Counted from the first letter of the stretch, positions 15,788-48,451 are shown. The stretch: DNA of 52,526 nucleotides from Octopus bimaculoides (GCF_001194135.2 NC_068999.1:53318683-53371208); one strand, 5' to 3'. Made by a program: numbers and translations. The notes: generated by a model not told the origin, from the letters alone.

Positions 15788-16782
15788 NNNNNNNNNNNNN
15801 NNNNNNNNNNNNNNNNNNNNNNNNNNNNNNNNNNNNNNNNNNNNNNNNNNNNNNNNNNNNNNNNNNNNNNNNNNNNNNNNNNNNNNNNNNNNNNNNNNNN
15901 NNNNNNNNNNNNNNNNNNNNNNNNNNNNNNNNNNNNNNNNNNNNNNNNNNNNNNNNNNNNNNNNNNNNNNNNNNNNNNNNNNNNNNNNNNNNNNNNNNNN
16001 NNNNNNNNNNNNNNNNNNNNNNNNNNNNNNNNNNNNNNNNNNNNNNNNNNNNNNNNNNNNNNNNNNNNNNNNNNNNNNNNNNNNNNNNNNNNNNNNNNNN
16101 NNNNNNNNNNNNNNNNNNNNNNNNNNNNNNNNNNNNNNNNNNNNNNNNNNNNNNNNNNNNNNNNNNNNNNNNNNNNNNNNNNNNNNNNNNNNNNNNNNNN
16201 NNNNNNNNNNNNNNNNNNNNNNNNNNNNNNNNNNNNNNNNNNNNNNNNNNNNNNNNNNNNNNNNNNNNNNNNNNNNNNNNNNNNNNNNNNNNNNNNNNNN
16301 NNNNNNNNNNNNNNNNNNNNNNNNNNNNNNNNNNNNNNNNNNNNNNNNNNNNNNNNNNNNNNNNNNNNNNNNNNNNNNNNNNNNNNNNNNNNNNNNNNNN
16401 NNNNNNNNNNNNNNNNNNNNNNNNNNNNNNNNNNNNNNNNNNNNNNNNNNNNNNNNNNNNNNNNNNNNNNNNNNNNNNNNNNNNNNNNNNNNNNNNNNNN
16501 NNNNNNNNNNNNNNNNNNNNNNNNNNNNNNNNNNNNNNNNNNNNNNNNNNNNNNNNNNNNNNNNNNNNNNNNNNNNNNNNNNNNNNNNNNNNNNNNNNNN
16601 NNNNNNNNNNNNNNNNNNNNNNNNNNNNNNNNNNNNNNNNNNNNNNNNNNNNNNNNNNNNNNNNNNNNNNNNNNNNNNNNNNNNNNNNNNNNNNNNNNNN
16701 NNNNNNNNNNNNNNNNNNNNNNNNNNNNNNNNNNNNNNNNNNNNNNNNNNNNNNNNNNNNNNNNNNNNNNNNNNNNNNNNNN
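15788..16782. other. Assembly gap (N run)
   Basis: Ns. Confidence 1.
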
Positions 16783-27168: not shown

Positions 27169-27356
27169 NNNNNNNNNNNNNNNNNNNNNNNNNNNNNNNN
27201 NNNNNNNNNNNNNNNNNNNNNNNNNNNNNNNNNNNNNNNNNNNNNNNNNNNNNNNNNNNNNNNNNNNNNNNNNNNNNNNNNNNNNNNNNNNNNNNNNNNN
27301 NNNNNNNNNNNNNNNNNNNNNNNNNNNNNNNNNNNNNNNNNNNNNNNNNNNNNNNN
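27169..27356. other. Assembly gap (N run) upstream of SDR exon A; could hide a small 5' exon
   Basis: Ns. Confidence 1.
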
Positions 27357-27527
27357 CACACCGATGGGGTGACATAGGCTCGGGAATAGAGAGGGGTGCA
27401 AGTGTTTCCCTTAAAATTTTCTTTGTGGCAATGAACACCCATCTTGGAAAACTTCATCGCCAAAGCGATTTGAACGTCACTTTCTATTGGATTTGTCTGA
27501 TTTGATTGATGTGCAAATATTATTACT

Positions 27528-27748
27528 GAGGCGGCGAACAGACAGAATCGTTAGCACGCTGGGCAAAATGCTTAGTGGCATTTCGTCCGTCCTTACGTTC
27601 CGAGTTCAAATTCTGCCAAGGTCGACCGTTCGTCCCTTTGGGGTCGATAAATTAAGTACCAGTGAATCACTGAGGTCGATGTAGTCGATTAGTCCCCTTC
27701 CTTCAAATTTCAGGCTTTGTACCTATAGTAAAAAGAGATTATTATTAT
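27528..27748 (+). mobile_element. SINE family A, subfamily with ATT-type tail
   Basis: ggcggcgaacagacagaatcgttagc head, gagttcaaattc B box, ggggtcgataaattaagtaccag core, ends in gattattattat. Confidence 0.88.
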
Positions 27749-28874
27749 ACTTGTGTATGTTTTGATATTAAGATTGAATGAAGTCGACCTTGTCCGTAAA
27801 CAATTTTGGATCTGGGTCTGCACCCACTAAGCATATTTTGTTTCTGCGTTTATGAGCATCGGACAAAATACTCTAGTATGTTAATTTGCCTTTCTGTTGA
27901 GCTCACATCTTGTCCAAATTCACTTGTGCCGTGATCGATGGAGATAACTACTGGATTTTGAAGTAATTGGCTTTATGCTAGAAGGAAGTGTTCCGTTATG
28001 ACTATAACCCAATGAGTGAAACCAATTAAATGCTTCCCTCTTCTCTTCTTGTTCGTCAAATATCTCTCAGGCTCCTCGGTTTCAACTTTTACAAATATAA
28101 TATAGTTCTACCTAGTCACACAAATTTAAGCCACATTGCTCTAATTGCACATGACCCCGTATTTAAATAAGCAATTAAATTTTTTGGTTTTGCTAACTGG
28201 TGCAAGCAAGAATGATTATAGAAGACAGTATTAGACTCGGTGATGTGACAAAACATTTGAAGAATGTCAACGGTGTATGAAAGTTCTTCTGAGGCTTATA
28301 TTTCCCATCCCATTCACGTCCGACCAAGGAAGAGAATTTTTTTCTTGGTGTGCTTTTTCTTACACTTAAAGTTTTGGGGATTTTTTTTTTTACCTAATTT
28401 AGACAAATAGCTGATTTTTTTGAAAGTGTGAAATAGTTTCTATATTTTTACCTATCCCTTCAGAATTTTTTTTCTTTCTGTAAACAGCTCTTAAATTTCA
28501 TGACTTCAACAAATACAAAATCTTTCATTTTGCATACGCACGTGTAAGCAAATTCATTCATACATACTATATAAACATAAGGTACAAAGATACAGCAAAT
28601 TTAATAAGCTCAGATAACGATGATCTGTACTAGAAGCAAGGTGAGACCTGAATCTTCTGCGGCAATTGTGGAAGAGAAGTGAACTAAGTTTCTTGCAAGA
28701 ATTAGGCTTGTGAAAAAGCTGACATTACCAAAGTATTAGCTCTTTTGCAAGATCTAGGGTTGTTGGGGGAGGATGGATTCATAATTATCGCTGTATCTTA
28801 ATATTTTACCATGAATTTTTTTTATACGTAAATTTAACTATTTCTGACCTTACAATCTTTTCCTTATTTTTCAG

Positions 28875-29088
28875 TGGTTCTGGTGACTGGTGCATCTGGG
28901 TTTGTTTCTCCTTATATCATCAAGCAACTTCAGGAGAACAGCTATAAAGTGAGAGGAGTGGTGCCAAATGTGGACGACGAGAAAAAGAAAGAGGAGAAGG
29001 TGAAGGCTTTGCAAAACTTATGTCCAGAAGCTGCTAATAAGCTCGAGCTGGTGGAGGTGGACAGCAGTAAATCTGATGCATGGGAAGA
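28875..29088 (+). CDS. SDR coding exon A (Rossmann beta1-alphaB-beta2: VLVTGASGFVSPYIIKQLQENSYKVRGVVP...DAWE)
   Basis: Pyrimidine tract plus CAG acceptor ending 28874; GTAAGT donor at 29089; entered in phase 1, left in phase 2. Confidence 0.93.
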
Positions 29089-32000
29089 GTAAGTATCCCT
29101 GCTAACCCTTAAGGAAATACATCATTAGAGCGTCGGACGAAATGCTTTGCAGTATTTACTCGGTCCCTTTTATACATTGAGTTACAAACTCCCTAAGGTG
29201 AACTTGTCATCGATAAGATATGAACCAGTGAAAAACTAGTCGCCTCTACCCCTCCCTCAAAATGTAGTCTTGTACCAGAGATAGAAATTGTATATTACTC
29301 CATGTCTTCTCATTATCTGTCTGTCTGTCTATCTATCCCTGTTTTCTCTCTGGAGATATAGCGTGTGTCTATTAGCAACAGTTATAGTATTAGTACCTAA
29401 TATCAATCTGTATATCCCACTTAACATAAATATACTGTAAGAAGGCTGAATACTGCGGTATTCGTCATCACAAAGCATCTGTAAGAAGTACTTCAAGACG
29501 AATACTGCAGCATTGTGATGTTCTTATAGTATATTCACGTTAAGTAGGATGTACAGATTGTTGAAGATACAGACCATGAGAAGGGTCTTAATGTTTTGAC
29601 TCGAATATCATTTCAACAGTTACTATAGAGATACATGGATGTGAAAATATTTTTTAACCCTTTAGCGTTTAAAGTTGCCATATCCGGTCCTGATATTATA
29701 CCTGTTCTACGGTCAAACCAGCTAGATCCAGCCTCTCACACCTATCCTACAATGTTATAATAAAAATAAGCAGTCACATCATCAAAATCTCAAAGCTATG
29801 AGATAATGCATTATTAATTGAAAACAGTGTGATTAAATAAGCATTACATTTAGTAATTCGAATACTAAAGGGTTAATAATTAATTGCTCATATCATCTAT
29901 CCATATTTTCTACCCCTGGCAGATAGTTCATCAGATAAGATTAGTATCTGCAATATACAAAGCTCAATTCTATTGAGTGTAAATGTCTTTTGAAAACGTA
30001 TGAAATCCTCAACACCAACTTTCATCACCTAAAGTTTCAGGCTTGCTACTTAAGGAATAAACGTTTACCTTATTTTTTTTTAAATAACATTTTCTTTAAG
30101 ATATGCTCTTAAATGCAACCTGAGGTTTCATTACACAGTCTCAACTCATTTAAAATTCACTTCAAAGCCTAGGGTTTCTGTGACCCTTCCTGCCCCATCA
30201 ATAGGTTTGATCACACAGTTTTCAATTAATAATGCATTATCTCATCGTTTTGAGATTTCTATGATGTGATTGCAATTCTGATACCAATTGGGGCAGGCAT
30301 TTGGATGCTCTCTTTCCTATTTATTGAGCCAAAACTCTGCTGGTACTGAACAGCTGAATCTACTTCAAAATAATAGTTTTCATTTCGGAAAAACCAGTCA
30401 AAAAGCTATGTAAATTCAAAGTATACAATTTCATCTCTGAAAGTTAAGTAATATAAGTTAGTTGATTAAATTGCTCTGGTATTTTGACCCCAGAAAGATA
30501 AAAGGCGGCGAGCTGGCAGAAACGTTGGCATGCCGGGCGAAATGCTTAGCGGTATCTCGTCTGCAATTATGTTCTGAGTTCAACTTCTGCCAAGGTCGAC
30601 TTTGCTTTTCATCCTTTCGGGGTCGATTAAATAAGTACCAGTTATGCACTGGGGTCGATATAATCGACTTAATCTGTTTGTCTGTCTTTGTTTGTCCCCT
30701 CTGTGTGTAGCCCCTTGTGGGAAGTAAACAAATAAGAAAAATAAAAAACATGGTTGGCTTCGATGGTATTTGAACTCAGAACATAGAACTGCAACTACTG
30801 CAAGGTACTTCAATGATTCTGTCAATCCATTTTAATTGAAAGCTTTGTTACTTTCTCTACTGACTACTTGTATGTTTCACAGTCAGATCAATTTTAAAGT
30901 TACTTCTTAGAGGCAGAATTTGAATATGTAAACCTTCTGCAGAGTAAATGACCCAAGTAACTTGAACCATATTGCCTATGTGGCATGGAAAACGAACTTC
31001 TATCAGTGTTGAAATGTTTTGCAAATGTATATTATTGTGCACATCTATTTGGAATATTTTTTAAATGTTTCTCTGATTTTTCTTGGGTTTCTATTTTAGT
31101 TGAACAGCTTTTAAATTTTGCATGAAATATAGGAGCTGGTGTGCTTCAAGGGGAAGGGTGCCTGTTTCAGCTTCTAAATCCAGTTGCTATTGCATTGGAG
31201 ATAAATTGTTCAGTGGACATTTCAAGATTTCTCTTTCGACCAGAGATGAGTTCTGCAGCTTCCAAAACAATAGTATAACTATTTGAATTGGTAGTGCAAA
31301 TCTTTGATTGAACTGTCAGCTCTAAGATATCTAAAGGTAGAAAGGCTAGTTTGGGTTTACCCCTAAAAATAAATTGCAAGAGGTTATGGATGAAAAAGAA
31401 AATGAAATTGCAGACCCTATCAGGTTTCATTTTTAACTCCTTTCTTAGCTCTTGTCCCACAGTTCACTTACAATACATTAAACAAAAATGGCCAGAATAA
31501 TGTTTAAAAAAAAACCTGGATTTAGATAATTCGTTGGAGTGAGTATACTATGGCTAGCAGTCACTCTCCTCATCATCATTGTTTAATGTCTTCTCTCCAT
31601 GCTGGCATGGGTTGGAGAGTTTGATGTGGAGCTGGCTAGCAAGGAGCTGTCTAGAGTCCAACTGTCTGTTGTAGATGCTCTTCCTAACACCAGATGTTTA
31701 TAAAAATAATTAGGGATTTTTTTTGTTTTTGTTTTTTTATGAAGTTTAATATTATACTATAGATCTAGATATCTACTTCAATGTGGAGCAGGTGCTGAAC
31801 TTGGTAACAAAATCACATATATGCTAAGTTCCCCTCTTGACTAAGTTATTTAAATATGTTACTAAAATAACTTTTAAATGTTTTTCATAATAGCTGAATA
31901 TTTGGACTTGAGTGTCTGAAACTGATATTAACCAGCTGGCTGGCCTCCAAACTGGTATGCATCAATGACATCATTGGATCACAGATGTGCTTCATACACT

Positions 32001-35000
32001 GGCTCACGAATTTTCAATTTCAAAGAATGACTAGTTAAATTTCTAATCAAGAATCTTGTGTTTGTATCTAATTAACCCTTTAAACCTGCCATATCCAGCT
32101 CAAATATTCCAGCTGTTTTACATTCAAACTGGGTAGATTCAGCCTCTTCCACCTACCACAATGTCATTCTAAAACAAAACAAACACCACCAAAGTCTTAA
32201 AGCTACAAGATAATGCATAATTACTTCAAAACGATGTAAATAAATAAGCATTACATTTGCAAAAGGTCTAGTCACTCTTATTGTGGTGACTGTGTGTCCT
32301 AATAAACTAGCTTTGTTTCATGTGCAGCTATTCCTTTTGTTTTTGATAGCAACAGATAGGATATATCTAGTAGGAATTAAAACTTTGTATCCATTTCTTG
32401 TAACAATGGATTTTCTAATTATGGTTGCTTCCATTTTTTTTTTTCTTTCAGACCAGTAAAAGGTTGTCAATATGTTATTCATGTCATCAGTCCATTTCCC
32501 AACAAAGAGTCGAAAGATGATAATGAATTGGTACAACCTGCTGTCGATGAGACATTAGCTGTTCTGAAGGCCTGTGTGGCTGCCAAGACAGTCAAAAGGG
32601 TTGTCATGACCAGTTCTTCAGCTGCTATCACATGTAAGTATGATTCCTATCAACTTCTGGAACAAATGTGTATGATATTTTGTCTGAGAAAATGGTGCCT
32701 GGTAAATATATCCTGCTTCTTTATCTGCAAGCAGTGAAATGTTTTGACTATTGTGGTAACAAATATATTTTACAGCTGAATGCTTTAAGCTCACTACATC
32801 GGCCGACTAATTTGCAATAAAATATGAAAAACCTTGTTAATTTTCTAAACTGTATTCTTTGTTTTCCACCATATATTCTTACTTTAACATGGCACCATTG
32901 TTTTACTTAAATGTGTTCTTATTAATTACAGCTAGCTGTTAATGTATGTATATTTATCACCAAGGTTAATAACCACAACATAGCTGACAGAAAATTTGCT
33001 TGAAATGACACGCATACATACAGATAAGCAGTGTGAGGCACATATTCCAAGCTAAACTAACCAGATAATACCAGACATTAAAACAAAATTTTTACATGGT
33101 CGTTAGCTAATGATGTCAACAGTTGCTATTTGCATGTCATTTTCTCTGATGACATAAAGCGGGTTTGTTGAGTGATGACATTCCAGGAAATGGCCATTTG
33201 TGTCAAGAGATATAGTGTCAAAGCTACAAGCCTAAAATATTTCTTATTGAAAATTCCTGACTAGTTATTTTGAGGAGGTGTAAAAAAAGGATGGACAAAA
33301 AAAACAGCCATACAGTTTTTGACTCCACATATTGAAATAATAAACTCTAGCCAACTCCATGAGCATCTGTTAACCATCTCTAAGCTCTAAAGTGGTTGTT
33401 TCCTGAAAGGTTAAAAACTTTATATGATGTGTTTAAAACTTGGAGTTTCCTCTTACAAAGCACTTCTATTTTGGTAATGTTAAAAGGAAGTAACTATTGT
33501 AACTATCCTTTTTTTTCTCTCTTAATCACTTGATGACTTTTTTGATTTCATCACTTGCATTTGGGAAGGAAATACCTATTCACATAGAATTTTAAGTGAA
33601 ACATTTGTGTCAATGTAGCATTCTGTGGAATATGAATTTAACATTTAAAGCTTACATGACTTGTTCCTACAATGACTTAATGCCTGTTTCAGAAAGATAT
33701 CCAAGATTATATACACTGAAGGAGTACAACAGAGCAAGAAGAAAGCTAGCTAAATAACATCTATTACCTCACTACAAGTATATTATAATAACAATAGCTG
33801 CAATACTTACTTAAGGCCCTATCCATTGATTTGTTCTTGTTTAATCAAAGCTCAACCTTGATCAAGGCAACCTATGATCAGAGATATTCCAATCATGTCT
33901 TTAGGGATATGCCCAAGAATATATTGTCCAATATATCCTTTCCCTATTTAAAATGGTAGTGCAGTTATGGAAGATTTGGCTACTATTTCTAGCATATTGA
34001 ATGAACACAGAGGTTCTAGTTGATACAGGTATTGTAGGATATTGTTTTAGTTGTTTGGCCTTTTTAACTTCCTGACCATCATTAAAAATCAATTGTATTG
34101 TTTTCCTGTCGGTGAATTTTAACTTAACTATAACTAGTGTCAAATCAAAGTACTATGGGAATCTACGTTTTAACAAGGCTTTCCCAAATTCTTTATTAAT
34201 GAGCATCACAACTTATTCTTCTATATTTTTGTCTGACATGTTTTTTTCTGTGTAGAAATGTATTACTAAGGCAGTTATTTTTTTTATTGCAGGCCATGGT
34301 GATGCTGCTGGAGATTCAAAAGCTTTCACTGAAGAAGCTTGGTCTGATCCTAGCAAGCTGGATCCTTATGGCAAATGTAAGACCCTTGCAGAAAAGGCTG
34401 GCTGGGAGTACATCAAGGAACTGCCAGGTGAGAAGGCCACTGGTGTCTTTATTGTGAGGGTTGGTTAAGAACAATTGGGAGAGTGTTTTATCAGCTGGTA
34501 GTGTAGTATTGTAAATGGTATATTTTTGAATTGGTGTGGAAATGGTCTAAGAGTTTTTGTTGATGGCAAAAGAAAAGGTGTAAAGTAATCTACTGGGTGT
34601 TTTGGGGCTGATTAATGATGTCTTTGTAGGAAATAGCAAAGTTAGAACTATTTAAGTGGTGTTTTAAAGTAAATTGTTCTGTATTAGACACTAGTCTGGC
34701 ATGCTCAGTCTCTTTCTTTATTTTAAGATCATAGTAAAAATATGAATATAATTTTAGCTCCAGAATCAATACCCATTTCAAATTATCATATAAATGCTTC
34801 TGTGATTTCAAGTATTACAATCATATTTTAAGAAATTGGTTTTGTTGTGCAGATAGGATTTTGCTATGAAAGCTACAGTTTTAAATTTAGTTATATTTCC
34901 CTAAGTGGAGTAGATACAAGGGCCAAAATATTGACTATTTTAAACAATGCATGTCCATGTATTCGTAGAATTTCAGTGAAATAGTTTCATCTTTCTCAAA

Positions 35001-38000
35001 TATTAAGTCCATTTTTTTGTATATTTTAGATGAAGATAAAATAGAGCTTACTGTAATTAACCCTTCATATGTGATGGGTCCAGTACTGCCAGGAACTACA
35101 TGCTACAGTTCAGAGGTATGTTACTTGTTTATATAACATTTATTGACTCTGTACAGATAGAATAATAGTTGTATTAATCTAGGTCCGCCTTTCTATTATA
35201 CATTCCTATTCCCCTGAATTTTCAGTGAGAGTTAACAAGAATGGAATCTATGGCTTATTCACAAAGGCTTCAAAATATTTTTCATGAGATAAAAAACATT
35301 AACATCTTGTCCAATCATCACTCTTATTTTAGCCACTTCTGGCTCATATCAACATCTACCATGAAATACCACATAAAAACTCACACACACTCCTATTTTT
35401 CATATTCTTCTATTCAACACTTTAATAAAATTATTCAATTTCTATAATAATTCTCTTGAAATAACATACTCCAGTGAATCAATAGCTCCAATTTAATTTA
35501 ACAACTATCATTTTAACATCCACTTTTCCATGCTTGTATGGAAGAGTTTTATCGAGGCAGATTTTCTATGGCCAGATGCCTTACCTGTCACCAACTTTTA
35601 CCTGTTCTCAAGTAAGGGAACCAGACATGATCATAGAGAACATTGGGAATGGATGAGATTCCTTGGATGACAGTGGCAATCATTTTACAACTATGATGCC
35701 AAGACAAGAAGACACAAACACATGGAAACTGTGTACAAGCAACACCTCTACATGTAGTTTCTCCATCTACCAAATCCATTCACAAGGTTTTAGTAGATGC
35801 TTGCCCAAAATGCTTCAAAGTGGGACTTCACTCAGAACCATGTGGTTGGGAAGCAAGGGTTCTTACTACACAGACTGCACCTAATGACTACCTGAAATAA
35901 GCTAAAAGCTAGCCGACCCTCCTCACCACTTGGATCAATCAGACTTGATGATTTCTTTCCTCGTGGCATCTAATGTGCTTGCATTGTCTGCTAGAAATAT
36001 CAAAATTCTCTCAAACTTTGCTTCTCTCTTAAAATGACACAGAACAGTATTCACGATATACAAAAGGACTGACATTAGGATGGGGTGGGCATAATTTATC
36101 AGGGCTGGCATATGGCTAAATTAATCAGTTGTGCAGGGGATTTAGTAACCAAGAAAGTAAATGACTCGTTTTATCTGAAATTTTTCTATATTACTCTTAA
36201 ATTGTTTTTAGATTGTTCAAGTGTTGTTGGAGAGAAGCAGTTTGGTCATTCCCAAGTTGAACTTTGCAATTGTTGATGTCAGAGATGTGGCCAGTGCTCA
36301 TGTCAAAGCTATGACCCTGGAGGAAGCTGCAGGTAAGAAGAAATTAAACACTGAAAAATCTTTCTCATCCAACATGACAGCATCCACACACCTGCCTCAA
36401 GTTGCAAGAAATATGAACCGATTAACTTTGAATTATGCCGTTATCTTAATGGTTGAAGAACGGTACATTGGATAATATAGTCATAGATATATTATGTATA
36501 AATAAAATAAAGCATAATCAGTTATAACACCTAAGGGACCATAAAATGTCCTAATAATGTTGGAATGCTCAATCTACACAAGAAGGCAAAAGTTATGAGC
36601 AAATAAATGAGCCTGTACAAAGTCACTTGATCTGCTAGAAATAGTCAATTTGCCTTCAAATCATTCTAGGCTGCCTTAAAAAGGCTGTGTTGCATAAGGT
36701 TGTCTGGATTACAATATTCTGCAAAAAAAATGGTATGATTATGGCTGAAATAGTTATGTCTATTCTCTTGAGCTGACCAGTCAGCTTCAACAACTGATTG
36801 AATCACCAGCATTGGTAGTTTAATTAACCAATTATTTCACACTCAGACCAAAGAACACCAAGCAGTTTCCCCAAAGGGCAATGTTTTGTCTGGGGATTAC
36901 TTTAAAGATGACTGTTTACAGTCTGAAGCTGGTCTGATTGTTGCTGGCACCCACCTAAAATGTGTAGCCTTATATCTATAATTGCTCTTCATAATGAGCC
37001 TAACTGGCACTCTATCAGTTATCATGACAAGGGTCCCTGTTGGTCTGATCAGCAGAACAGCCTGCTCATGAAATAAACATGCAAATGGTTGAGCACTCTA
37101 CAAACATGGGTACTCTTAACACAGTTCCCATGGAGATTCAGCATGACACAGGCTAGTCCTTTGAAATACAAGTACTGAGCAGACTGGAGCAACATGAAAT
37201 AAAGTCTTGCGCAAAAACACCTGCTAGGTATCATGCGAAATAACCTAACCACTAAGCCACACGCCTTCACAATAAGCCATGTCTGTTACTAGATTAATGT
37301 CCCATATTTCATTTTTTCCCCATTTTGACATAATAACCAAGTTATATTTGTTTTCTCTTCAGGAAAACGTTTCATTGTGCACGCTAATGAAATGTGGATG
37401 AAAGATATTGCTCAAGTATTGGCCAAGGAGTTTAAATCTCAAGGTTAGTAACATTTTTATTTTTCTATAATGAAATTTCAACAAATAATCATGAAAGCTA
37501 TCAGTATGTCACAAGTATGAATGAGCATTGGCATTAATGTAGTTCAGTTTTATCTAAAAATTGGTAAAGAGCAGAAGAATAACAATGTATTGCACTGTTA
37601 AGATAGGAAACTGCTGCAAGCCAATGAGGGAGCTTCTACAGGGTTTCTCAACCTGTTAGAAATAGCAACCAGATTTCACTAGTTTCTTAAAGAAAGCATA
37701 CATCAAATGCAGTTTTAAACTTTGGAAAGTAAAAAGAATGGATTTCCATGTTTTGGTTACATATCTGCAAGATCAGAACTGAAATAGGTGAAACTAGTTT
37801 CCTTATTAATGTTGGAACCTCTGCACTGTTACTTGACCTATTAGAAATAGCAACCAGATCTGTAAATCACACGTTGCTGCCTTAGAAATGGATAATATGG
37901 GAGCAAGTGCAGTGTGCCTTGAAGAAAGATTGAATTTAAATGGTTTTGCTATGCTTGCTCAATCGAGGTTAATCCGATACTAAAGGAGACAGTAGTAAGC

Positions 38001-39379
38001 CTTTCAGGGGAAACTAAGTGCAGACAATCAATCTCCTTCTGAAATAATGTACTTAAAGTATTTAGTTAAGGAAGTAAGAAATGCTGTTAAAAACTTTTTA
38101 AAATACATAACGTCCTAATAGTCTTGTCACTGACGGAACACCATTCTTTAAATAAAATGAAGAGCTAAAAATTCACGTTCTTTGAAAATTTTGAGGCATT
38201 AAATTTTTTTTTTTTTTGCCTTTTTACTTGTTCTATTTTTGTTTTTTAAAGGTATTGGGTATGTCATAAAGTGGCTTCCTTTTTCATTTTAGGTTATAAC
38301 GTCCCAACCATTAACTGCCCCAACTTTGTATTGCAACTGCGAAGTCTTTACGATAAAGAAGTCAAGAAATATCTCCCACAAGTTGGTAAAATATTCAAGT
38401 TGGATAATACTAAGGTAACTATGAAATTCCCTTTACTTACAAATATGGTTTTTTCTTCTGGTTGTAGTAAAGTTTAGGAAGTAAGAGTGAGAGAAAGTTG
38501 TGGTGAAAGAGTACAGCAGGGTTCGCCACCATCCCCTGCCAGAGCCTCGTGGAGCAGGTGTTTTCGCTCAATAAACACTCACAATGCCCGGTCTGGGAAT
38601 CGAAACCGCGATCCTCTGACCGCAAGTCCGCTGCCCTAACCACTGGGCCATTGCACCTCCACTTTGTTTACAATATACCTGCAGAATAGATGAAGAGGTT
38701 TTAGCTAAACTGTTTTTAGTCATAAATGTTTTTGATCTGAATTGAGCAGCAATCACAACTTGCAAATATTTCAGAGTGGGGTGTTCAACAATAATTCAAT
38801 GATCGTAAATAGTTTGAAATTAAGAATTCTTTCTTCCATTTGGAACAAGTTTAGTGTCTAGATTAGAAGTGTAACAAGGATTACAGAATGTTAAAAGCAT
38901 TGTGTATATTTTCAATAATTAGTTGTATTGTTGAAATTCATTCATTGAAATATTTAACACTTTTTAAATTTTCTTTTTAGATGAAGGAGACCCTTGGTAT
39001 TACTCCAAAAGAATGTAAAGAAACCATCATTGATATGGCTTACAGTTTAATAGAAGCTGGTGTCATCAAAAAGACCAAGAAGTACAAGGGACAGAATGCT
39101 CAGAATGCTGCAGAGGAGAATGCTGATGCCAAAGAAGATGAAGAAAAGAAGGAAGGAGACAATAGCGATAAGCCAAAGGAGAATGGAGAAGTGAAGGAGG
39201 AAGATAAAGCAGAGAAAGAAGAAACAAAGGCAGAAGAGAAGGCTTCAGAAGAGAAGGCTGAGGAGAAGAAAGACGAAAAAATTGAAGAAGCTGATAAGGA
39301 TAAGAAAGAAGATTCAAAACCAGAAAATGAAGAGAAAGCAGAAGAGAAAAAAGCTGATGAGCCTGAACCAGAAAAATAA
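28875..39379 (+). CDS. Multi-exon gene: extended SDR / NAD(P)-dependent epimerase-dehydratase family protein (aldehyde reductase II / dihydroflavonol-reductase-like) with acidic E/K-rich C-terminal tail; 5' start exon not located
   Basis: Joining 28875-29088, 32452-32633, 34293-34427, 35030-35115, 36212-36332, 37363-37443, 38293-38414 and 38981-39379 (1340 nt, plus 1 nt owed by an upstream exon) gives one uninterrupted frame. All introns are GT..AG with matching phases (2,1,1,0,1,1,0). Motifs seen: VLVTGASGF (Rossmann TGxxG), HVISPFP, KRVVMTSS, YGKCK (YxxxK), INPSYVMGP, VDVRDVASAH, GKRFI, DNTK. Confidence 0.95.
29658..29872. mobile_element. piggyBac-like MITE (215 bp)
   Basis: TTAA|CCCTTTAG ... 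CTAAAGGG|TTAA, i.e. TTAA on both flanks and CCC/GGG termini typical of piggyBac. Related copies at 32076-32266 (same strand) and 30206-30269 (inverted fragment). Confidence 0.75.
30504..30736 (+). mobile_element. SINE family A, full-length, intronic, nested in an older antisense copy
   Basis: ggcggcgagctggcagaaacgttggc...gagttcaacttc...ggggtcgattaaataagtaccag...ccccttgtgggaagtaaac; collinear with 10850-11078. Confidence 0.9.
31571..31693. repeat. Dispersed repeat D (catcatc...ttccatgctggcatgggttgg...gatgc.cttcct); partial copies at about 25948-25985 and 35505-35595
   Basis: The motif tccat(g/a)ctggcatgggttgga occurs at 31597 and 25963; a diverged version with ccagatgccttacctgtcaccaac occurs at 35505-35595. 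Confidence 0.6.
32076..32266. mobile_element. piggyBac-like MITE, second diverged copy
   Basis: ttaaccctttaaacctgccatatcc...cagcctct...aagctacaagataatgcat...taaataagcattacattt is collinear with 29658-29872; the right terminus is decayed. Confidence 0.65.
32452..32633 (+). CDS. SDR coding exon B (PVKGCQYVIHVISPFP...KRVVMTSSSAAIT)
   Basis: T-tract plus CAG acceptor ending 32451; GTAAGT donor at 32634; contains the TSS catalytic Ser motif. Confidence 0.94.
34293..34427 (+). CDS. SDR coding exon C (HGDAAGDSKAFTEEAWSDPSKLDPYGKCKTLAEKAGWEYIKELP)
   Basis: CAG acceptor ending 34292; GTGAGA donor at 34428; YxxxK at 34367-34381. Absent from the ORF track because it is short. Confidence 0.94.
35030..35115 (+). 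CDS. SDR coding exon D (EDKIELTVINPSYVMGPVLPGTTCYSSE)
   Basis: TTTTAG acceptor ending 35029; GTATGT donor at 35116; family motif INP..V.GP. Confidence 0.92.
35755..35881 (-). mobile_element. SINE family C, 5' part, intronic antisense
   Basis: Minus strand: gtgtagtaagaacccttgcttcccaaccacatggttctgag...gtcccact...ttgggcaagc...aaccttgtgaatggatttggtagatgg. Confidence 0.72.
36212..36332 (+). CDS. SDR coding exon E (IVQVLLERSSLVIPKLNFAIVDVRDVASAHVKAMTLEEAA)
   Basis: TTTTTAG acceptor ending 36211; GTAAGA donor at 36333; VDVRDVAxAH motif. Confidence 0.94.
37363..37443 (+). CDS. SDR coding exon F (KRFIVHANEMWMKDIAQVLAKEFKSQ)
   Basis: Pyrimidine tract plus CAG acceptor ending 37362; GTTAGT donor at 37444; G-KRFI motif completed across the splice. 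Confidence 0.92.
38293..38414 (+). CDS. SDR coding exon G (YNVPTINCPNFVLQLRSLYDKEVKKYLPQVGKIFKLDNTK)
   Basis: TTTTAG acceptor ending 38292; GTAACT donor at 38415; phase matches both neighbours. Confidence 0.91.
38476..38662 (-). mobile_element. tRNA(Arg)-like SINE family B (possibly an octopus OR-type family), 3'-truncated, intronic antisense
   Basis: Minus strand reads gtggaggtgcaatggcccagtggttagggcagcggacttgcggtcagaggatcgcggtttcgattcccagaccgggc. A box is TGGCCCAGTGG; B box is GGTTTCGATTCC (variant). About 10-12 differences from the 51284-51531 copy, by eye. Confidence 0.9.
38981..39379 (+). CDS. SDR terminal coding exon H (MKETLGITPK...KKTKKYKG followed by a 95-aa E/K/D-rich tail, TAA)
   Basis: TTTTTAG acceptor ending 38980; phase 0 from exon G; ORF 38981..39379 in the track. 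Confidence 0.93.
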   Translation: MKETLGITPKECKETIIDMAYSLIEAGVIKKTKKYKGQNAQNAAEENADAKEDEEKKEGDNSDKPKENGEVKEEDKAEKEETKAEEKASEEKAEEKKDEKIEEADKDKKEDSKPENEEKAEEKKADEPEPEK

Positions 39380-42300
39380 AAATATTAATAATTATTATGA
39401 TTATAAAAGATAACAAAGGGCGAGGAAAAAAGGAAAAAATGGAAGGAAAAGGAATGAGATATTCACAATTGCTAAACAAAAAAAATATTAACAGAAAAAA
39501 AAAAAAGAAATGAAGATCTGTTTGTGAAGATATCTAGGCAACAGCCATTTCTGATCTTAAAATCTTCGTTGTTGCTTCTTGATACTGGAAGTTTTGATTT
39601 GCTCATTTTTCTATTTCATTTGTCAAAATCTTGTCAGTCAAAAACAAAACATAAAAAAAGATATATGTATAAAACTACTGATGCTCCCAGCCAGCATCAC
39701 TGACTCACTGTCTATTTCTTTCTATTGTATATCTCGTTCTATAATTTGAATCTATTTACTTGCTATCCCTCTTTCTAAAGTTCCTGATGAATATCCTGAC
39801 ATAAATTGATATAACAAAACACATTTACCAAAAAAAAAAAATTCAAAAAAAAAAAACATGGGGGTTTCAACTGAGTTCTTTAAAAGAAACTTTTTTTTTT
39901 TTTTCAATTCACCAAGTTTTGACCAATTACCTACCTTGGTTGTTATATTTTAAATTGAATATAAAGAAATAAAAAAAATGAAATATATATATATATATAT
40001 AAAATTCAAATGAAAAGTTAAACAAGTGATTTCCTTTTTCTGTAATTTGGTGGAAGTGGACGTCAAAGGAAATATATAAATAATTCTGGGGACACTGAAT
40101 GCTAAGAGGAGCATGTGACAGTTTTTTATGGAAAAGCTAACATCTATAAACCATCTTAAATGATTTTGAAAAATGGAAAAAAATTAAAATAAAATAAAAT
40201 TATATTATGAATAATTTGCTAATGGTAATTTCTAGATATGTTTAAGTTTTGATAACTAGTATATTATTAGTTTTCTTTTCTCATTTCAAGAGATTAATTT
40301 CTTGTTTCTGCAGAGCTTACCCAAGATTTCTAACTTAAAATTGCACTATTGTCTTGAGGCGGGTACAGCTATACTTTAATTGAATTAGTATTGAAAAGAA
40401 ATTTCAATTTTAAAATCTTTTGCATTTTGTTTATCACATTCCCAGTAAGCTTATTCTGATAATAGAATTTAACGTTTTTAATTTAATTTTTTCTCTGATG
40501 AATTGTTTGTAAGTGTCTAAATGAAATTCTTCATTTAGAGAAATCAGTAACTTACCTCTCTGTGGGTATTATTGCAAAGACTTTGTATATCATTCCAGCT
40601 TCTTCCACAAAAATGGATGTAACACCCTACCCCAGAACTACACTGCCTCCTTCTTACCATCATCATCACCTTCCTCCTCCACAACACTAAAATATAATGC
40701 CTCTATGACTCTGGACGTTTTTTTTTCCTTTTTCTGTGTTTGGAAGTATCATTTTCCTCTTAATTCCTTTCTTCCCCACCCCAAAGTTTCTTGGTAAAGT
40801 TTTGATTCTAATAGTGGTGCTTGACCATTCAATTGGTTTGAGCATAACTCTTTCTCCTCTTTCCTCCCCAACAATTCTTAGATTTCCCATCATATTTTGA
40901 TGTTTTGTAGAACTCTCTAACTCCACTCTTAAAGAACTAAGGATATTCTATTTCGAGATGCACAGATCTATTTCTGATTGAGATAACAAAAATACGACAG
41001 TGGGTTAGGTGTCGGTTGCCATTTTAAGACTGTTCATCTTTGAATTATCTGCATATTAAAAAAAAAAAACAAGAGGAAGGTGGACAATGTTAAGTGTAAT
41101 TGTTGCTGACAAAGACAGCTTTCTCATGCCAGTGTCACACCTTTTTTGAGCTTTGTTAAATAATTAAGTGGTTGTTAAGGCCAAACTACTAATATAGATT
41201 TTCATCTCTAAGTCAGTGTATAACCAGCTTTCTCCATTGATATTTCTCAAGGCTGGTGCATGCCTGGTTCCTTACAGGTGTGATCTTGATCAGATTAAAA
41301 ATTGGAATTTTTACTAACGGTCATACAAGTTTTGTTTCTGTGTTCACAGATACAAATGGTTATTTCTGTATTAAACTAAAGCTAAGGAGTAGGTTTTCCT
41401 TAATCTGGTGGCTCTTAAGCCGGATCTAATTCTTTGTAGCTATTAATAACCAACATTTCCTGTGATACAGTGATTTTTGCCTTCATTTTCTTATACTTAG
41501 CTTTACACTAAGCCTGTTTCTGTTGCAATTCCCCTAAGTTGGGGAAGCAATTTAAGATCCTGTATTAAATTTGAAGTTATTTAGCAATATTTCCAGTTTT
41601 AACTACTAAACTGAATTTTGTTCTTTCTGTAGGTATGAACAGTTAAACCTTGTTGAAATTTTTTTTTCTTGCAGCATTCCTTAATGTATTTTGGGTTTTT
41701 TTAAGAATTGTGCAACAGATTGTGTTGCTTATGTTCTATATTCTTAACCAAATTTTCAATGTTTTGGTACTACATATGTTCACACTAAGGAAACTGCCCT
41801 GGTCACAATCATTTCATGCCATTGGCCTTTAAAAATAAACAAATTGATACAGCCCCACCAATATTATAATGATTTATTGTCTGAATGTTCATAAGATATA
41901 TATAGATTTATATTAATACTCAATATATATTTGTGTGAGTGAATTTATGCTGAAAAATGGTGATTAGAAATGCTAAAATTTACATTAAAAAATTTTCTAT
42001 ACATACACATTCATTTGTTTCGAAGTATGTTGCAAAGAAAAAAAAATTCAAGACTGTTCCTTTCTCTAACGGAATTTTCATGCTGGTATCTGTTTCTACA
42101 TACCGTTATTTTTGTCACATTATTTCTGGTGCTGTTTCATTACAGTTACCAGACAGCTTCAACTTGTGGGGTGGGGGGTGCGCTTTCAGAGAGTTAATGT
42201 TTGTGTGTATGTATGTGTGTGTGTGTGTGTGTGCGTGCGTAAGTCTGTTTGTGTGTCTGCGTGTGTCGACGTACACACTTCACTGTAGCTATGTCCATCT

Positions 42301-44799
42301 TTCCACAGTGCAATCATGTAAATGCAATGATAAACAGTTCCATAATTATTCCGTTGTCCAGAATCTCCAGTGATGAAATCACTCCAGATTCTTTTTGACG
42401 ATTCCAGATGACTGTATATCTTTTGATGACAGTTCATTCTAAATAGCTATGAAAAATTTCAATAAATGTGAACGAAAAAAAATGAAATAATGTGAAAAAC
42501 AAATGTCTTAGTTCATTTCTTTGTGTTAAGATTTCCTAACGCTTTGAACCCGACCCTACTACTTTCAACATAACAAGCTGGCTTCCATTTCTTACTTTTG
42601 GTTGCTGTCTGGTTTACGTAGCCAACCAGACTATATACATATATATATACTGCAGACATCTGACTTTTTAGTCCATTTAAAGTTGACATCATGGGATAAA
42701 TTTACTCCTAATACCTATTTTGGCCAGTAAATTTTAGCAACCTGTTTCCTGTTTAATCAGGAGTTTGCTAACGTGTGATTCAACTTGTACCTTCTCAACT
42801 TATCTAACCTGTTAATTTTTTTTTATTTTTAAATTAGATATAACATCATTCTAATTGTGATGTTACATATTTACAACTCAAATGGTTCACAGAATTAATA
42901 CTGGACAAGATGCACTGCAGAATTTAGTTATCTAGCAGCTCTTAAACCTATCCTATTCTATACAGCTATTAAGTTTCTTATACATTGATTTTTTTTTTTT
43001 TTTTTCTCGTTGCAACTTGTGTGAAATTCTTTTCTGTTGCAACTCCTGTAAATTAAAGACTATTATGAAAACTGGTGCTATCGTGAAATATAACTCAATT
43101 TCACACTTAAACGTGGCAGCCTGCAGCAGCAGCAGCAGCAGGGAATGCTATTTAAATCCATCAGTTGAAAGGTTTATACCTGTTACAACGATCCAACAAG
43201 ATCACTACCAGAAAAAGCAATTGATATCTTGTCAGAAATAATTCAGTAAGCCCAGTCTTTACAAAGGGAACGTCTCTGCCCTGTCTTTTTCTTTTGACTA
43301 TTAGTACCTAAGTTTTTGTAGTGCTCCATGTGCTGGAGACCTACCCTATCGCCCAGAGAATTTCAAGGTCATTAAAGTTGCACATATCAACAAGCATTCG
43401 ACGTTCCTGGGATAAGGGGCCTGTTCCATGATGTCTATCAATGAGTTTCAGCTTTTGGAATTGAAGTTATCAATCGGTATTACCCTAATGTTTCTTTTTG
43501 ATTCCCTCTGGTATCCTCCGAGCTTTGGTAATGCCTTTTGTTCTTCATGAACTTTAAGGACATACTTGCCGTCGCATCTAACAACGTGCAAATCTGTACA
43601 CAGGACACTATCTTTTACACATCGTTGGTTTTTTTGTGCATAGACATCATCCACATGATTCCAAGAAGCCCCATTCTAGACGTGCACCAATTCTCAGATC
43701 GGAGACTTAAAAATATCCTTCAATGCAAGCATAAATTTAATCCTCATCAGTAGCTTTAGGGACAAACACTATATACAAAGGAAAGTCCTGAAGAACATAC
43801 AATCAATACCTTCAAAGATATAACCGGTAGACTTCACAACCTTTGAGGATTCTCATACTGATTTTTGTGTGTTGTGTATATATGCACGCACACTTACGCT
43901 ACGACCACTTCAGCATCCGACGTGTGGCATACTGTGCACCCGTGCAGGCAATGTCAATTTTGACGGAGTGAACTAATATATACAGCACAAACATTTGATC
44001 ACAAACAGATCATCTGTGCAGGTTATTCAGCAAGACATTGCAGAGCCCTCATCTTCTGTCTGTTACAGGGGAGTCCGTGATATATAAAATCACGTTAAAA
44101 TTCTCTCAAATGCTAGATTTCCTCTACAGGGCCCGAAAATAACTTTATAAAGCTTAAGAACTACTATGCAAATATCCCAAGACCCCAGCTGATCAATAAT
44201 CAGACGTCTCTTTCCCGTACCTCAAATCAATTATTTTCCTTTTAAGACTGCAACCTCCTACCAATGTTCTGATTGAATAGCAACTGTATCAAGCTTACCA
44301 GTCTAGAGAGGGACTTTCAAAAGCTATTGACCTTTTCTTTCTCTGACTGTTCCCCAGAATAGCTATCTTCTTTACGTGTTTTATTTTAATGTTAGTTGTC
44401 AATCGAAACAACGATTCAAACAAGAGGATCTCCACCCAGTTGTTCGACGTGCTATAAATAGCAACCAAACTTTCATAAATTACTGTGCAGGATGATGTAG
44501 TCTCTGAATATGCCTTTAGATCACACCTCTGTTCTATCAGCTTTAAAACAAAAAAATGTTTCCACGCAATAGTTCCCTTTTATATGGCCTTGGCCACTTG
44601 CCATATAAACCATAGTTTGAATTTAGAAGATAAGTTGCTGGCTCACAAATTGCATTTATCCATCTTAAACTTCTCTAGTGTTCGTCCTCACGTCTTAGAT
44701 GGACAGTGAGATATTTTAGATCAAAAAACGTGCCAACTAGTTTGAAAAAGCCTGATTAGGACCCAGCGATGTTTTTTTTGTTTTTTTTTTTTTTTTTTT

Positions 44800-45091
44800 N
44801 NNNNNNNNNNNNNNNNNNNNNNNNNNNNNNNNNNNNNNNNNNNNNNNNNNNNNNNNNNNNNNNNNNNNNNNNNNNNNNNNNNNNNNNNNNNNNNNNNNNN
44901 NNNNNNNNNNNNNNNNNNNNNNNNNNNNNNNNNNNNNNNNNNNNNNNNNNNNNNNNNNNNNNNNNNNNNNNNNNNNNNNNNNNNNNNNNNNNNNNNNNNN
45001 NNNNNNNNNNNNNNNNNNNNNNNNNNNNNNNNNNNNNNNNNNNNNNNNNNNNNNNNNNNNNNNNNNNNNNNNNNNNNNNNNNNNNNNNNNN
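44800..45091. other. Assembly gap (N run)
   Basis: Ns. Confidence 1.
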
Positions 45092-45848
45092 CAAAAGAAC
45101 GGTTAAATATTGATGTCGAACTCTTTAAAATCATGCTTCAGCTAAACTAACGAATACTGCATCACAGGTGGTAAGCTTCCGGAAAGAAAGGCTGTGACGC
45201 AGCTTCAGTCCCTGATAGAAATTATTTCATTTCAATTGCGCCGCTATTGCCATTTTGGAATGGCTTGGTGGTCATAAGGTTGGTTGGTTTGTTTCTTTCT
45301 TTCCTTCCTTGAAAGGTGAGTCTTTCTCCCAAGACAAAAAGTTGTCTCGGTGAAAGTATTCTGCATTATTCGAACATCACAAAAAGCATACTGAGGTTTG
45401 TTTCGGAGTGCTACTATAGAAGTATCTGCTATAGATTAATCGACGAGTCAACTTCACCTCCATTCTAGCTTAACAGGTCCTCAATAACTAGGTCCATCAA
45501 TTTTGTACTTTTCGTCCTTCAAAGGAAATACTTTACGCTAAACGCTACACTCGATCTTTCCGAACTGCAATAGTCACAATTCCATCCTCGCTCAATGTGC
45601 TACTGCTTAAAACTGTTATTAAATTAGTCAACGAGGAAGCCCCAGCGCAGTCGTTCGACCAGCAAGAATTACCGATCAAATCTCTCACAAGTCATAGAAA
45701 CCGCATAAAAAAAAGAATTTTAATTGGATAGTGAACCCAAAAGTATCTGGAACACCTTTGAAACTTAGATGTATTCGATCGAAGCTTAAGCAACTACGCG
45801 TATAAACAAAAACTAACAACTGATTCGTTTAATATTTCTAGAACAAAA

Positions 45849-45951
45849 ATGCCACCTAGGTCGACTTTGCTTTACATCCTTTCGGGGCCGATTTAATCGG
45901 CTTAGCCCTTTTCACAAAGTTGCTGGCCTAGTGCCAAAATTTGAAACCAAT
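45849..45951 (+). mobile_element. SINE family A, 5'-truncated with internal deletion
   Basis: ggtcgactttgctttacatcctttcggggccgat joined directly to taatcgg, then the tgctggcctagtgccaaaatttgaaac tail. Confidence 0.75.
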
Positions 45952-46680
45952 ATTTCCAGAAAGATTCTCTGACTGAATCTCCAGTTCACAAGTTCTGACA
46001 TTTGACGAAAGTCTTTCTCCAGCTGTTATCCCTGGAGTTTGTTTTGTGGTGTTTACCGTAAGACAATTAAAAACTGTAAACTACCTGTTTTTAATATCGC
46101 CAGAAGCTATATTCGAGCTATTATTTTCCTACATCATGTGGCTACATTATCTTTTATGTTAAGGTCACATCTATGAATGCAATTTTTGTCATCCCTATAT
46201 TTGTTGTATTATTTAAAAGGACTACTCGATTTGTCCGTAAGTTATTCTTCCTCATATGAATCTAAAATTATTATATGATTCGGTTTACAATATCATCCTC
46301 TACTTGTGATTTAATTTTTCTTAATACAATTTGTAACGAGTTTGTCATGAGGACAAAACAAGAGGAAATACCCATGGATACATTCTGCATAAAAACCAAG
46401 TAGTAAGGTCTGTACGAAGATGCTTAATGTGAGCCAAGATATTAGAATTAATTAGGATTATTCCTGTGATGAGAAAAACTCGACAATTCTTGTAAGAAAT
46501 GCAAGAGATAACTTCTAAATTTGAATTAAACATAGTATGTGTGCAATGCAGTAGAAGGGTGTCTAATTTTGGTAGTATAGTGACAACTCTGGACATATTT
46601 TGATCTCATTAGACTACCTCAGCAATATCATCAAACAAAGATAACTTATAAAATGCCTTACTGGCCAGAATTAATTATTG

Positions 46681-46882
46681 AAGGTGGTGAGTTGGCAGAA
46701 TCGTTAGAGCGCCGGAAAAATTCTTGACAACATTTCTTTCGGATCTTAACGTTCTGAGATCAAATTTACATTTCATCCTTCCGTGGTCAATAAAATAAAG
46801 TACCCATCAAGCATTGGGGTCGATATAATCGACTTGCTCCTCCCCTCAAAATTACTGAACTTGTGTCAAAATAAGAATTATT
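46681..46882 (+). mobile_element. SINE family A, diverged
   Basis: aaggtggtgagttggcagaatcgttag head, tttcatccttccgtggtcaataaaataaagtacc core, ggggtcgatataatcgac. Confidence 0.82.
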
Positions 46883-47295
46883 AAGCTAATGATTATTTTT
46901 CCTTGTCACCAGTACAATTTCAATAAATTAAAATTTCTGGGGTCGCTCCATTAATACGTTAGCAGCGACCTTACTGTTAAGTCACGAAGATTAATTCTCC
47001 AAAACCTGACTTTTTAGAACGGATGGGATTTACTATGGGTGGATTATTATTCCTTACATGTATCCCCAAAAAGCATTAACATTTTGTTCTGATAGGCGTA
47101 GATTATTTACAAGAAAACTGACAAGTTTGAAGAAACTAGGCGAATAGTGTGTTTAGCCCAAATCCACCCTAATCCAGCAATCAATCTTATGCTCACACGA
47201 GTTCTATCTGTGAACTATGCCGCTTTTTTCTTTTTAGGCAGAATGTATCTAGGACTACACTATCCACTGTCTCTTTCTTTTATAAAAGGCTAGAG

Positions 47296-48422: not shown

Positions 48423-48451
48423 ACACACACACACACACACACACAGACACA

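Follow-up and report, generated by a model that had tools for sequence, protein, structure and literature searches.

What becomes of a reductase whose cofactor pocket has been rewritten while its catalytic residues have been left in place? The question is raised by LOC106875389, a gene for a short-chain dehydrogenase/reductase (SDR) lying in a 52,526-nt stretch of Octopus bimaculoides DNA (GCF_001194135.2, NC_068999.1:53318683-53371208), which is referred to below, at its full length, as the window. The original prediction, made from three coding stretches between positions 28875 and 34381, had described an SDR with a remodelled NADP(H) pocket and an altered function, and had listed a switched cofactor preference, a loss of dinucleotide binding and a non-catalytic role without choosing among them. 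The remodelled pocket was borne out and the altered function gained partial support. On sequence grounds, the pattern is solid, lineage-wide and convergent, and the protein is classed here as an atypical or pseudo-SDR. As to what it does, the account that we favour, with a confidence somewhat short of even, is that the protein is functional, that it would no longer bind NADPH in the canonical way, most likely having a weakened or re-specified site, and that it would have inherited a non-catalytic role dependent on its C-terminal tail.

The gene underlies the exons at 28875-34427 and was identified via cluster members from O. bimaculoides (XP_014778984.2), O. vulgaris/sinensis, and Argonauta hians; its full protein, as given by the exon model and by RNA contigs, has 454 aa. 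Near-identical proteins are found in O. vulgaris/sinensis and Argonauta hians, under the names 'oxidoreductase YDR541C', 'phenylacetaldehyde reductase', and 'GRE2-like'. That the protein is an intact extended SDR of the aldehyde-reductase/flavonoid-reductase type, as had been proposed, is agreed upon by family, sequence, and structure searches: it matches the Pfam Epimerase family (PF01370, E=4.5e-19), a phmmer search of PDB sequences returned CCR, DFR, and Gre2 at 1e-34 to 1e-31, and an AlphaFold2 (AF2) model, with a predicted TM-score (pTM) of 0.77 and a predicted local distance difference test score (pLDDT) of at least 90 for 253 residues, gave Foldseek TM(target) values of 0.8-0.9 to CCR/CAD2/Gre2/DFR and of up to 0.90 to 4R1U, 5TQM, and 4QTZ. 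The octopus protein is an extended SDR of the CCR/DFR/Gre2 branch, composed of a Rossmann domain and a C-terminal substrate domain.

Within this fold, the motifs of the cofactor site depart from the usual ones. The glycine-rich loop reads TGASGFVS, with the first two glycines kept and, in the third position, a serine that is found in none of 117 homologs; in decapodiform orthologs, where it reads TSASGFIA, the first glycine is itself replaced. The basic residue that follows strand beta2 (G-T-V-R) is gone, the octopus sequence being G-V-V-P, and the A-D-L adenine motif closing beta3 has become V-D-S, in which the Asp is kept and the Leu (99.5% conserved) replaced. HxASP in beta4 and PAVxGT in alpha4 read HVISP and PAVDET, respectively. 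Three of these replacements fall at the following codons:

28964-28966, + strand: Pro39 (codon CCA), in place of the Arg that clamps the NADPH 2'-phosphate and is found in 97% of canonical homologs
32486-32488, + strand: Ile92 (codon ATC), replacing the Ala of HxASP, which is 99.5% invariant
32549-32551, + strand: Glu113 (codon GAG), replacing the Gly of PAVxGT, which is 98% invariant

Further departures in octopus are V37 (T in 94%), V70, and C169. The residues quoted in the original prediction were all recovered in their places, namely, besides the three codons above, the Ser and Pro of the glycine-rich loop (28907-28909 and 28910-28912), TSS (32609-32617), and YGKCK (34367-34381).

Such departures are rare among homologs. 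In the first 120 of them, position 39 is Arg in 116 of 116, positions 72, 92, and 113 are Leu, Ala, and Gly in 120 of 120, position 20 is Ala or Gly in 117 of 117, and position 37 is Thr in 114 of 117. Among ~280 homolog domains, comparable deviation was seen only in P0144, an exon fragment from an octopus congener that is 96% identical, and in P0136, a degenerate mollusc protein. A set of 43 ultra-conserved positions, each conserved in 93% or more of 192 canonical homologs ranging from bacteria to animals, provides a more general measure: the octopus protein is off consensus at 7 of the 43, its close molluscan orthologs at 0-1, and the positions that are replaced are 94-99.5% invariant in the 192. 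All solved relatives retrieved (CCR, DFR, CAD2, Gre2, and aldehyde reductase II) have canonical motifs. As had been claimed, the substitutions cluster in the dinucleotide-binding motifs with the Ser-Tyr-Lys residues kept, and the new residues are absent from active homologs and from the solved structures retrieved.

The distribution of changes over the 43 positions is uneven. All coleoid sequences are off consensus at 37, 39, 72, 92, 113, and 169, to which decapodiforms add 14 (G to S) and 131, and octopods 177. From position 173 on, every ultra-conserved site is kept, including P197, G202, P203, DVRDVA, H244, and R257, except for the conservative A177G of octopods. Of the coleoid-wide changes, 5 affect the 19 sites of the N-terminal half and 1 the 24 others; with p=0.07 in a Fisher test, this clustering is only suggestive. 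All coleoid orthologs retain the catalytic S134, Y166, and K170, with a Cys just before the Lys where 97% of homologs have Ser. Judged by its residues, the site is thus a split one, with the adenosine/2'-phosphate half rebuilt (T37, R39, L72, A92, G113, and later G14, A20, and A70) and the nicotinamide/catalytic half (T133, S134, Y166, K170, P197-P203, and S212) intact; K46, D71, and the substrate domain of the coleoid proteins are canonical as well.

We take HxASP and PAVxGT, going by SDR motif tables, to be structural/active-site motifs that line the cofactor cleft and hold no direct NADP ligands. In structures of DFR, FNR, and ANR, the key NADP ligands are Arg43, Lys50, Asp69, Thr131, Lys177, and Ser215 (PMC10531346); their octopus equivalents are P39, K46, D71, T133, K170, and S212, the Arg alone being missing. 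With five of the six named ligands and the catalytic triad intact, and with a fold predicted at high confidence, the protein could be an ordinary NADPH-dependent aldehyde/ketone reductase, in which large residues at 92 and 113 and a small one at 72 compensate for one another and Lys46, with others, binds the 2'-phosphate. We nonetheless consider this improbable: A92, L72, and G113 are 98-99.5% invariant in the 192 homologs and in all the solved structures retrieved, T37 and R39, on the 2'-phosphate side, are both gone, and an acidic residue, E113, has been added to the cleft.

When did the pocket change, and in which animals? All sequences retrieved from octopods, argonauts, cuttlefish, and other decapodiforms have T37V, R39P, L72 to S/G/T, A92I, G113E, and S169C in common. 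Seven further cephalopod orthologs (P0269-P0274 and P0276, the latter from Acanthosepion pharaonis), 77-80% identical over their full length, likewise have V37, P39, I92, E113, C169, and a residue other than Leu at 72. Orthologs from Mytilus, Solemya, Pecten, oysters, Dreissena, Haliotis, Patella, Littorina, Babylonia, chiton, annelid, nemerteans, arthropods, and echinoderms are canonical, apart from isolated losses of R39. In neighbour-joining trees (without support values), coleoids form a single clade within molluscs, set off by a long stem and with short branches inside it, and neither a second nor a canonical coleoid group was seen among the homolog hits, that is, among retrieved proteins and with no whole-genome check. 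The remodelling is thereby dated, as far as the tree goes and with no Nautilus sequence among those compared, to the stem lineage of coleoids, where it affected the one ortholog of a gene present throughout molluscs; a private octopus or paralog-specific event is not what was found. Two sequences looked for a time like candidates for filling in this history and were discarded: P0275, considered as a coleoid paralog or a Nautilus sequence, is from Mytilus, and P0287, considered as a Nautilus intermediate since it has R39P and is otherwise canonical, groups with bivalves. No ortholog was found in the RNA runs of the other species designated 'organism D'. A search with the N-terminal 176 aa as query returned nothing above 54% identity and missed the cephalopod orthologs, owing to the limit of the word index; these were recovered with a C-terminal query.

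The isolated losses of R39 consist of R39L in Solemya velum (P0277) and R39P in the bivalve-like P0287 (SRR27896765), both otherwise canonical. They suggest that constraint on NADPH-specific binding may be looser in this molluscan SDR family than elsewhere, and the dispensability of R39 in these two orthologs is a further argument for an ordinary reductase. The original prediction was to fall if the same residues proved common in active NADPH-dependent homologs; this is not so for 72, 92, and 113, and weakly so for 39, on account of these two bivalve-type orthologs.

Later changes affected the region of the glycine loop, with G14S in decapodiforms and A20S and A70V in octopods. Positions 14, 20-22, 70, and 72 differ between octopods and decapodiforms, position 72 even varying within octopods (S or G; S, G, or T across coleoids). 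Because these positions vary among coleoids and are fixed elsewhere, they indicate what appears to be locally relaxed or shifted constraint in the adenine and glycine-loop region. Over the protein as a whole, constraint is strong. The ratio of nonsynonymous to synonymous substitution (dN/dS, or omega), computed pairwise by the Nei-Gojobori method on transcript coding sequences for unsaturated pairs, is 0.04-0.08 overall among coleoids (omega ~0.05), with 0.03-0.10 for the Rossmann part, 0.04-0.08 for the catalytic/substrate part, and 0.03-0.04 for the tail. Since dN/dS is low in every domain, the whole coleoid protein, altered pocket and low-complexity tail included, is under strong purifying selection and is not decaying. 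Strong purifying selection on the Rossmann part would also be expected of an ordinary NADPH-dependent reductase.

The tail deserves attention in its own right. After the end of the fold (..AYSLIEAGVI) come a basic motif, KKTKKYKG, and then 103 residues of 30% Glu and 26% Lys (pI 4.65), predicted to be disordered (AF2 pLDDT <50 for residues 368-453). Homologs of ~420-510 aa that combine VKKxKKY(K/R)G with an acidic tail are found in molluscs, chiton, millipede, crustaceans, and echinoderms; nemerteans and a scorpion have a variant basic motif (VKKPKPKK, VKKSKKSKK), and a jellyfish homolog has none. As this distribution shows, the acidic tail did not originate in cephalopods; it is a feature of an ancient group of animal extended SDRs resembling Gre2, CCR, and DFR. 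Molluscan tails share the short motif (E/D)KPKENG(D/E/K)VK(E/D), KPKENG occurring in 53 of 488 retrieved proteins, of which all those identifiable are from molluscs (chiton, bivalves, Haliotis, cephalopods, Aplysia, and Lymnaea). The octopus protein has the features of this molluscan orthogroup, i.e., a length of ~440-470 aa, the N-terminus MAAxxxSxLVLVT, the SDR body, VKKxKKY(K/R)G, and a tail with (E/D)KPKENGxVK, and coleoid tails align nearly residue for residue. Two side observations concern the group of P0130, P0140, P0121, and P0123: some homologs have tails drawn out by long tandem repeats, of (EEPKAEETPV)n in a protein of 784 aa and of KEEPKKEEL in one of 637 aa, and a pseudoscorpion gene model fuses 2-4 SDR units.

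A second molluscan lineage has modified the same protein. Heterobranch orthologs were examined in Lymnaea, Bulinus, Biomphalaria, Plakobranchus, Elysia, Arion, Candidula, Bradybaena, and Aplysia, where the protein is known as reductase-related protein (RRP; A. californica, P0407, NM_001204605). The Plakobranchus/Elysia proteins are annotated under that name too, and the Biomphalaria protein simply as 'reductase'. The changes in this clade affect both the cofactor site (G14D/E, G17S/N/T, R39S/T/A, L72P, A92I/V, S93K, and G113A) and the catalytic side (Y166L, K170L/V/I, and S212Q/T, with a 3-residue deletion in the 204-212 loop); Aplysia RRP itself has G14D, G17S, R39S, L72P, A92I, S93K, G113A, Y166L, K170V, and S212Q. 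By their residues, heterobranch orthologs unambiguously look like dead SDR enzymes. They have nonetheless kept their length and the basic motif and, in most cases, KPKENGxVK: the tail of Aplysia RRP retains EEKPKENGEVKDED, and the KPKENG-type motif is absent from some species such as Plakobranchus, Elysia marginata, and Bradybaena. RRP mRNA was reported to be regulated by serotonin and sensitisation in Aplysia neurons (Zwartjes et al. 1998, cited in PMC4259342).

Aplysia RRP and the other heterobranch proteins resemble the octopus protein in belonging to the molluscan orthogroup (437-481 aa for the most part), in the order of SDR body, basic motif and acidic tail, in the (E/D)KPKENG(E/D)VK tail motif (most of them), and in the alteration of sites 14, 39, 72, 92, and 113. 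These same five positions are changed in both lineages, A92I being identical. In contrast to coleoids, however, heterobranchs have lost G17, S93, Y166, K170, and S212, all of which the coleoid protein keeps. Caenogastropods, vetigastropods, and patellogastropods are canonical, and the coleoid and heterobranch clades do not join in the tree; because non-heterobranch gastropods, bivalves, and chiton are canonical and the two clades lie apart, the two degenerations are independent.

The heterobranch case bears directly on how much of the coleoid site is still in use. The coleoid protein may be a complete pseudoenzyme, which binds no dinucleotide since Ile92 and Glu113 fill the pocket, uses the triad and the substrate domain as a surface for a ligand or partner, and acts as a scaffold or regulator through its SDR body and tail. 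The alteration of sites 14, 39, 72, 92, and 113 in the dead heterobranch/RRP clade, with the identical A92I, argues for this, as do the free exchange of S, G, and T in coleoids at position 72, an invariant Leu elsewhere, the decapodiform TSxxG in place of TGxxG, and the weakness of matches to Pfam nucleotide-binding families. Heterobranchs, however, have replaced Tyr166, Lys170, and Ser212, whereas coleoids keep these residues as well as T133, S134, D71, K46, and G17, at an omega of ~0.05, so that we hold complete loss to be possible but unlikely. Put differently, changes at positions that are also altered in cofactor-less heterobranch proteins would favour lost binding, and catalytic residues kept in coleoids and lost in heterobranchs would favour an active-site half that is still used. 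The span over which coleoids have retained the catalytic half we take to be roughly 300 million years, as an estimate.

The adenosine/2'-phosphate half of the NADPH site was rewritten on the coleoid stem, together with S169C next to the catalytic Lys; under the account that we favour, the result would be a functional protein that has given up canonical NADPH binding. What remains would be a weakened or re-specified nucleotide/ligand site, independent of the 2'-phosphate (NAD(H)-like), on top of an intact catalytic half. Part of the selected function would be non-catalytic, tail-dependent, and inherited from the family, because heterobranchs have lost catalysis and yet kept the protein, its length, and mostly KPKENGxVK; a second, non-enzymatic role of the family is probable in this light.

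Several observations weigh against this account. G14S in decapodiforms and free variation at 72 fit a complete loss of dinucleotide binding better than re-specification. Conversely, the retention of G17, K46, D71, T133, S134, Y166, K170, and S212 fits an ordinary NADPH enzyme with compensated packing, and P0277 and P0287 have lost R39 and nothing else, so that this change need not be disabling. Presumably, going by SDR motif tables and GalE contacts, A92 and G113 serve in packing under adenosine and in the 'hNhxGT' motif. Moreover, the AF2 model is cofactor-free, and any function of the tail would be read from its conservation alone. A broader scenario, which we offer as a doubtful one, is that an ancient animal SDR with a basic-acidic tail moonlights by means of that tail, and that coleoids and heterobranchs independently dropped canonical NADPH binding through changes at the same five sites, the coleoid protein persisting in a long-lived 'half-dead' state, its adenosine half-site destroyed and its catalytic half conserved. 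In that state it would either sense or bind a nicotinamide-containing or substrate-like ligand, or work as an enzyme on some non-canonical cofactor.

Could the odd pocket instead reflect a decaying gene, an assembly artefact, or drift private to octopus? The absence of the first coding exon from the assembly and the 'partial' status of the RefSeq model might suggest so. The exon model, built from homology-guided tblastn and splice-site reading and checked with RNA-seq reads and transcript contigs, comprises eight coding exons within the window, ending in a TAA stop codon at 39377-39379:

28875-29088, + strand: coding exon 2, the first inside the window, translated as (L)VLVTGASGFVSPY...RGVVPNVDDEKKKEEK...VEVDSSKSDAWE, RNA depth ~100-230
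32452-32633, + strand: coding exon 3, whose translation has HVISP (I92), PAVDET (E113), and MTSSS (T133, S134)
34293-34427, + strand: coding exon 4, with PYGKCK (Y166, C169, K170) from translation and RNA-seq
35030-35115, + strand: coding exon 5, INPSYVMGPVLPGTTCYSSE, encoding the loop on the nicotinamide side, in which P197, G202, P203, and S212 are canonical
36212-36332, + strand: coding exon 6, with the invariant substrate-domain motif DVRDVA..H
37363-37443, + strand: coding exon 7, GKRFIV...KEFKSQ
38293-38414, + strand: coding exon 8, GYNVPTINCPNFV...KLDNTK
38981-39379, + strand: last coding exon, where the SDR fold ends (..AYSLIEAGVI) and is followed by the basic KKTKKYKG motif and by an acidic tail, rich in Lys and Glu, that contains the conserved SDKPKENGEVKEED

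Exon 2 thus covers the glycine-rich loop as well as V37 and P39, where strand beta2 ends, and the adenine motif D71-S72. RNA-seq confirms the junctions 29088>32452, 32633>34293 (>160 supporting reads per run), 34427>35030, 35115>36212, 36332>37363, 37443>38293, and 38414>38981, and the 3' untranslated region extends to ~39485, where RNA contigs end in poly(A). On the 3' side, loose ends of exon 2 RNA join 32452; on the 5' side, an RNA contig runs further, with ...ATGGCAGCAGCGAACGACTCTCCAT. This contig reveals the first coding exon, 25 nt long (MAAANDSP plus 1 base; ATGGCAGCAGCGAACGACTCTCCAT), which was not found in the window when up to 2 mismatches were allowed, nor was any k-mer of at least 12. 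Most probably it falls within an assembly gap (27169-27356 is the closest) or before the window begins. The RefSeq model, XP_014778984.2, is partial because this exon is missing from the assembly, and starts with intron read-through (LTLQSFPYFSV). With the first exon included, the exon model is identical to the transcript-derived database protein P0268 (454 aa).

RNA contigs giving a full 454-aa open reading frame equal to the exon model, the confirmation of all junctions, the sharing of the changes by coleoid orthologs, and a dN/dS of ~0.05 refute decay, artefact, and private drift, to which we attach a practically negligible probability. The three stretches on which the original prediction was based are indeed consecutive exons with intact frame and AG/GT splice sites; its motifs were right, but it covered three of the eight exons of the window, the gene running on to 39377-39379, and missed the ~100-aa Lys/Glu-rich tail.

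Cephalopods offer a general precedent for enzyme recruitment in their S- and omega-crystallins, and the original prediction had drawn that analogy. Exon depths are ~100-450, corresponding to ~150-285 reads per kilobase per million (RPKM; two runs, ~6% of reads sampled), and transcripts were found in 14 of 14 indexed RNA-type runs of O. bimaculoides, which suggests expression across many tissues. In run X15, from the species designated 'organism C', the octopus transcript is present at low depth alongside a contig of ~2,160 depth (window 36296-36333; flanks SIVDVRDVAA.. and ..GKRF). The latter was suspected to come from an octopus paralog and turned out to match decapodiform orthologs instead; either two cephalopods seem to be represented in the run or the contig comes from a closely related ortholog with high expression. 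This decapodiform-type contig, the fairly high mRNA level, and the precedent itself are all that would speak for recruitment as an abundant structural or refractive protein, whether in the lens, in the light organ, or in some other structure new to cephalopods. Transcripts are, however, present in all 14 runs and their level, although high, is far below that of crystallins, and the family, its tail, and the parallel degeneration also occur where no lens is involved, as in Aplysia neurons (PMC4259342). The crystallin analogy finds no support here, and such recruitment is very unlikely.

Two A>G mismatches between RNA and genome were noted, at 34352 (AGC>GGC, S161G; ~6% in run X24, 0% in X23) and at 36269 (ATT>GTT, I234V; ~16% in X24, 6% in X23). 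A-to-I recoding is common in coleoids, and both are candidate recoding sites, outside the cofactor motifs. In run X6, an RNA contig diverges at 39204, within the tail-coding repeat (loose end AGGAGAGAAGAAAGAAGAAGATCAGAAAGA); the low-complexity tail could differ there between alleles or assemblies, or the contig could derive from an unrelated transcript rich in Lys and Glu.

An open reading frame scan and tblastn over 1-28000 and 39600-52526 revealed no other convincing protein-coding gene or SDR paralog. The rest of the window is AT-rich, with microsatellites (CA/GT and TA runs) and six N gaps, among which are 828-1102, 14721-14730, 15788-16782, and 27169-27356. A very high-copy interspersed repeat occurs at 27472-27839, 30416-30783, and ~29680-29863, with word depths of up to ~9x10^5 in a DNA-type run and in the thousands in RNA runs. 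Two direct repeat copies (27529-27626 and 30503-30600; 82% identical) flank exon 2, lying in its two introns, and an inverted repeat pair is formed by 29770-29837 and 30206-30273.

If our account is true, coleoids and heterobranchs would amount to a natural replicated experiment on how an SDR leaves NADPH-dependent catalysis, with five shared pocket positions in two lineages, one of which would have halted at an intermediate state conserved for hundreds of millions of years. It would also open the function of Aplysia RRP to testing, along with that of a widespread, uncharacterised family of tail-bearing animal SDRs. The database names 'YDR541C', 'GRE2-like', and 'phenylacetaldehyde reductase' imply an activity that the cephalopod and heterobranch proteins probably lack, and this annotation transfer needs correcting. 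No long-standing open question is touched.

How, finally, does the octopus protein compare with known systems? Our literature search found nothing on the cephalopod protein LOC106875389. The NCBI names of cephalopod proteins are taken from the yeast Gre2/YDR541C enzymes. With yeast Gre2/Ari1/YDR541C and Sporobolomyces aldehyde reductase II (4PVD, 1Y1P), which are NADPH-dependent aldehyde/methylglyoxal reductases, it shares the extended-SDR subgroup, the fold, and S...YxxxK (E of 1e-33 to 1e-18, TM of 0.8, identity of ~30%); unlike it, these enzymes have canonical TGxxGFIA, an R/K clamp for the 2'-phosphate, D-L, HxASP, and AVxGT, and are tail-less. Plant CCR/DFR/CAD2 (5TQM, 4R1S, 2C29, and 4QTZ) are its best PDB matches in both sequence and structure and have the same motif architecture, but all their cofactor motifs are canonical, the Arg is present, there is no acidic tail, and their substrates are plant-specific. 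NmrA-like/HSCARG-type atypical SDRs are redox-sensing pseudoenzymes that show the SDR scaffold in a partly non-catalytic role. They lose the catalytic Tyr and keep dinucleotide binding; the octopus protein, in which Y166 is kept and the dinucleotide motifs are altered, is the reverse and does not show the loss of Tyr with a retained NAD(P) motif that marks that group. Taken by its motifs, the octopus protein lacks four of the defining cofactor motifs of Gre2/CCR/DFR enzymes and retains their fold and catalytic triad. On these comparisons, its nearest named relative is Aplysia RRP, which is more degenerate, and the nearest characterised enzymes are yeast Gre2/Ari1/YDR541C and plant CCR/DFR.

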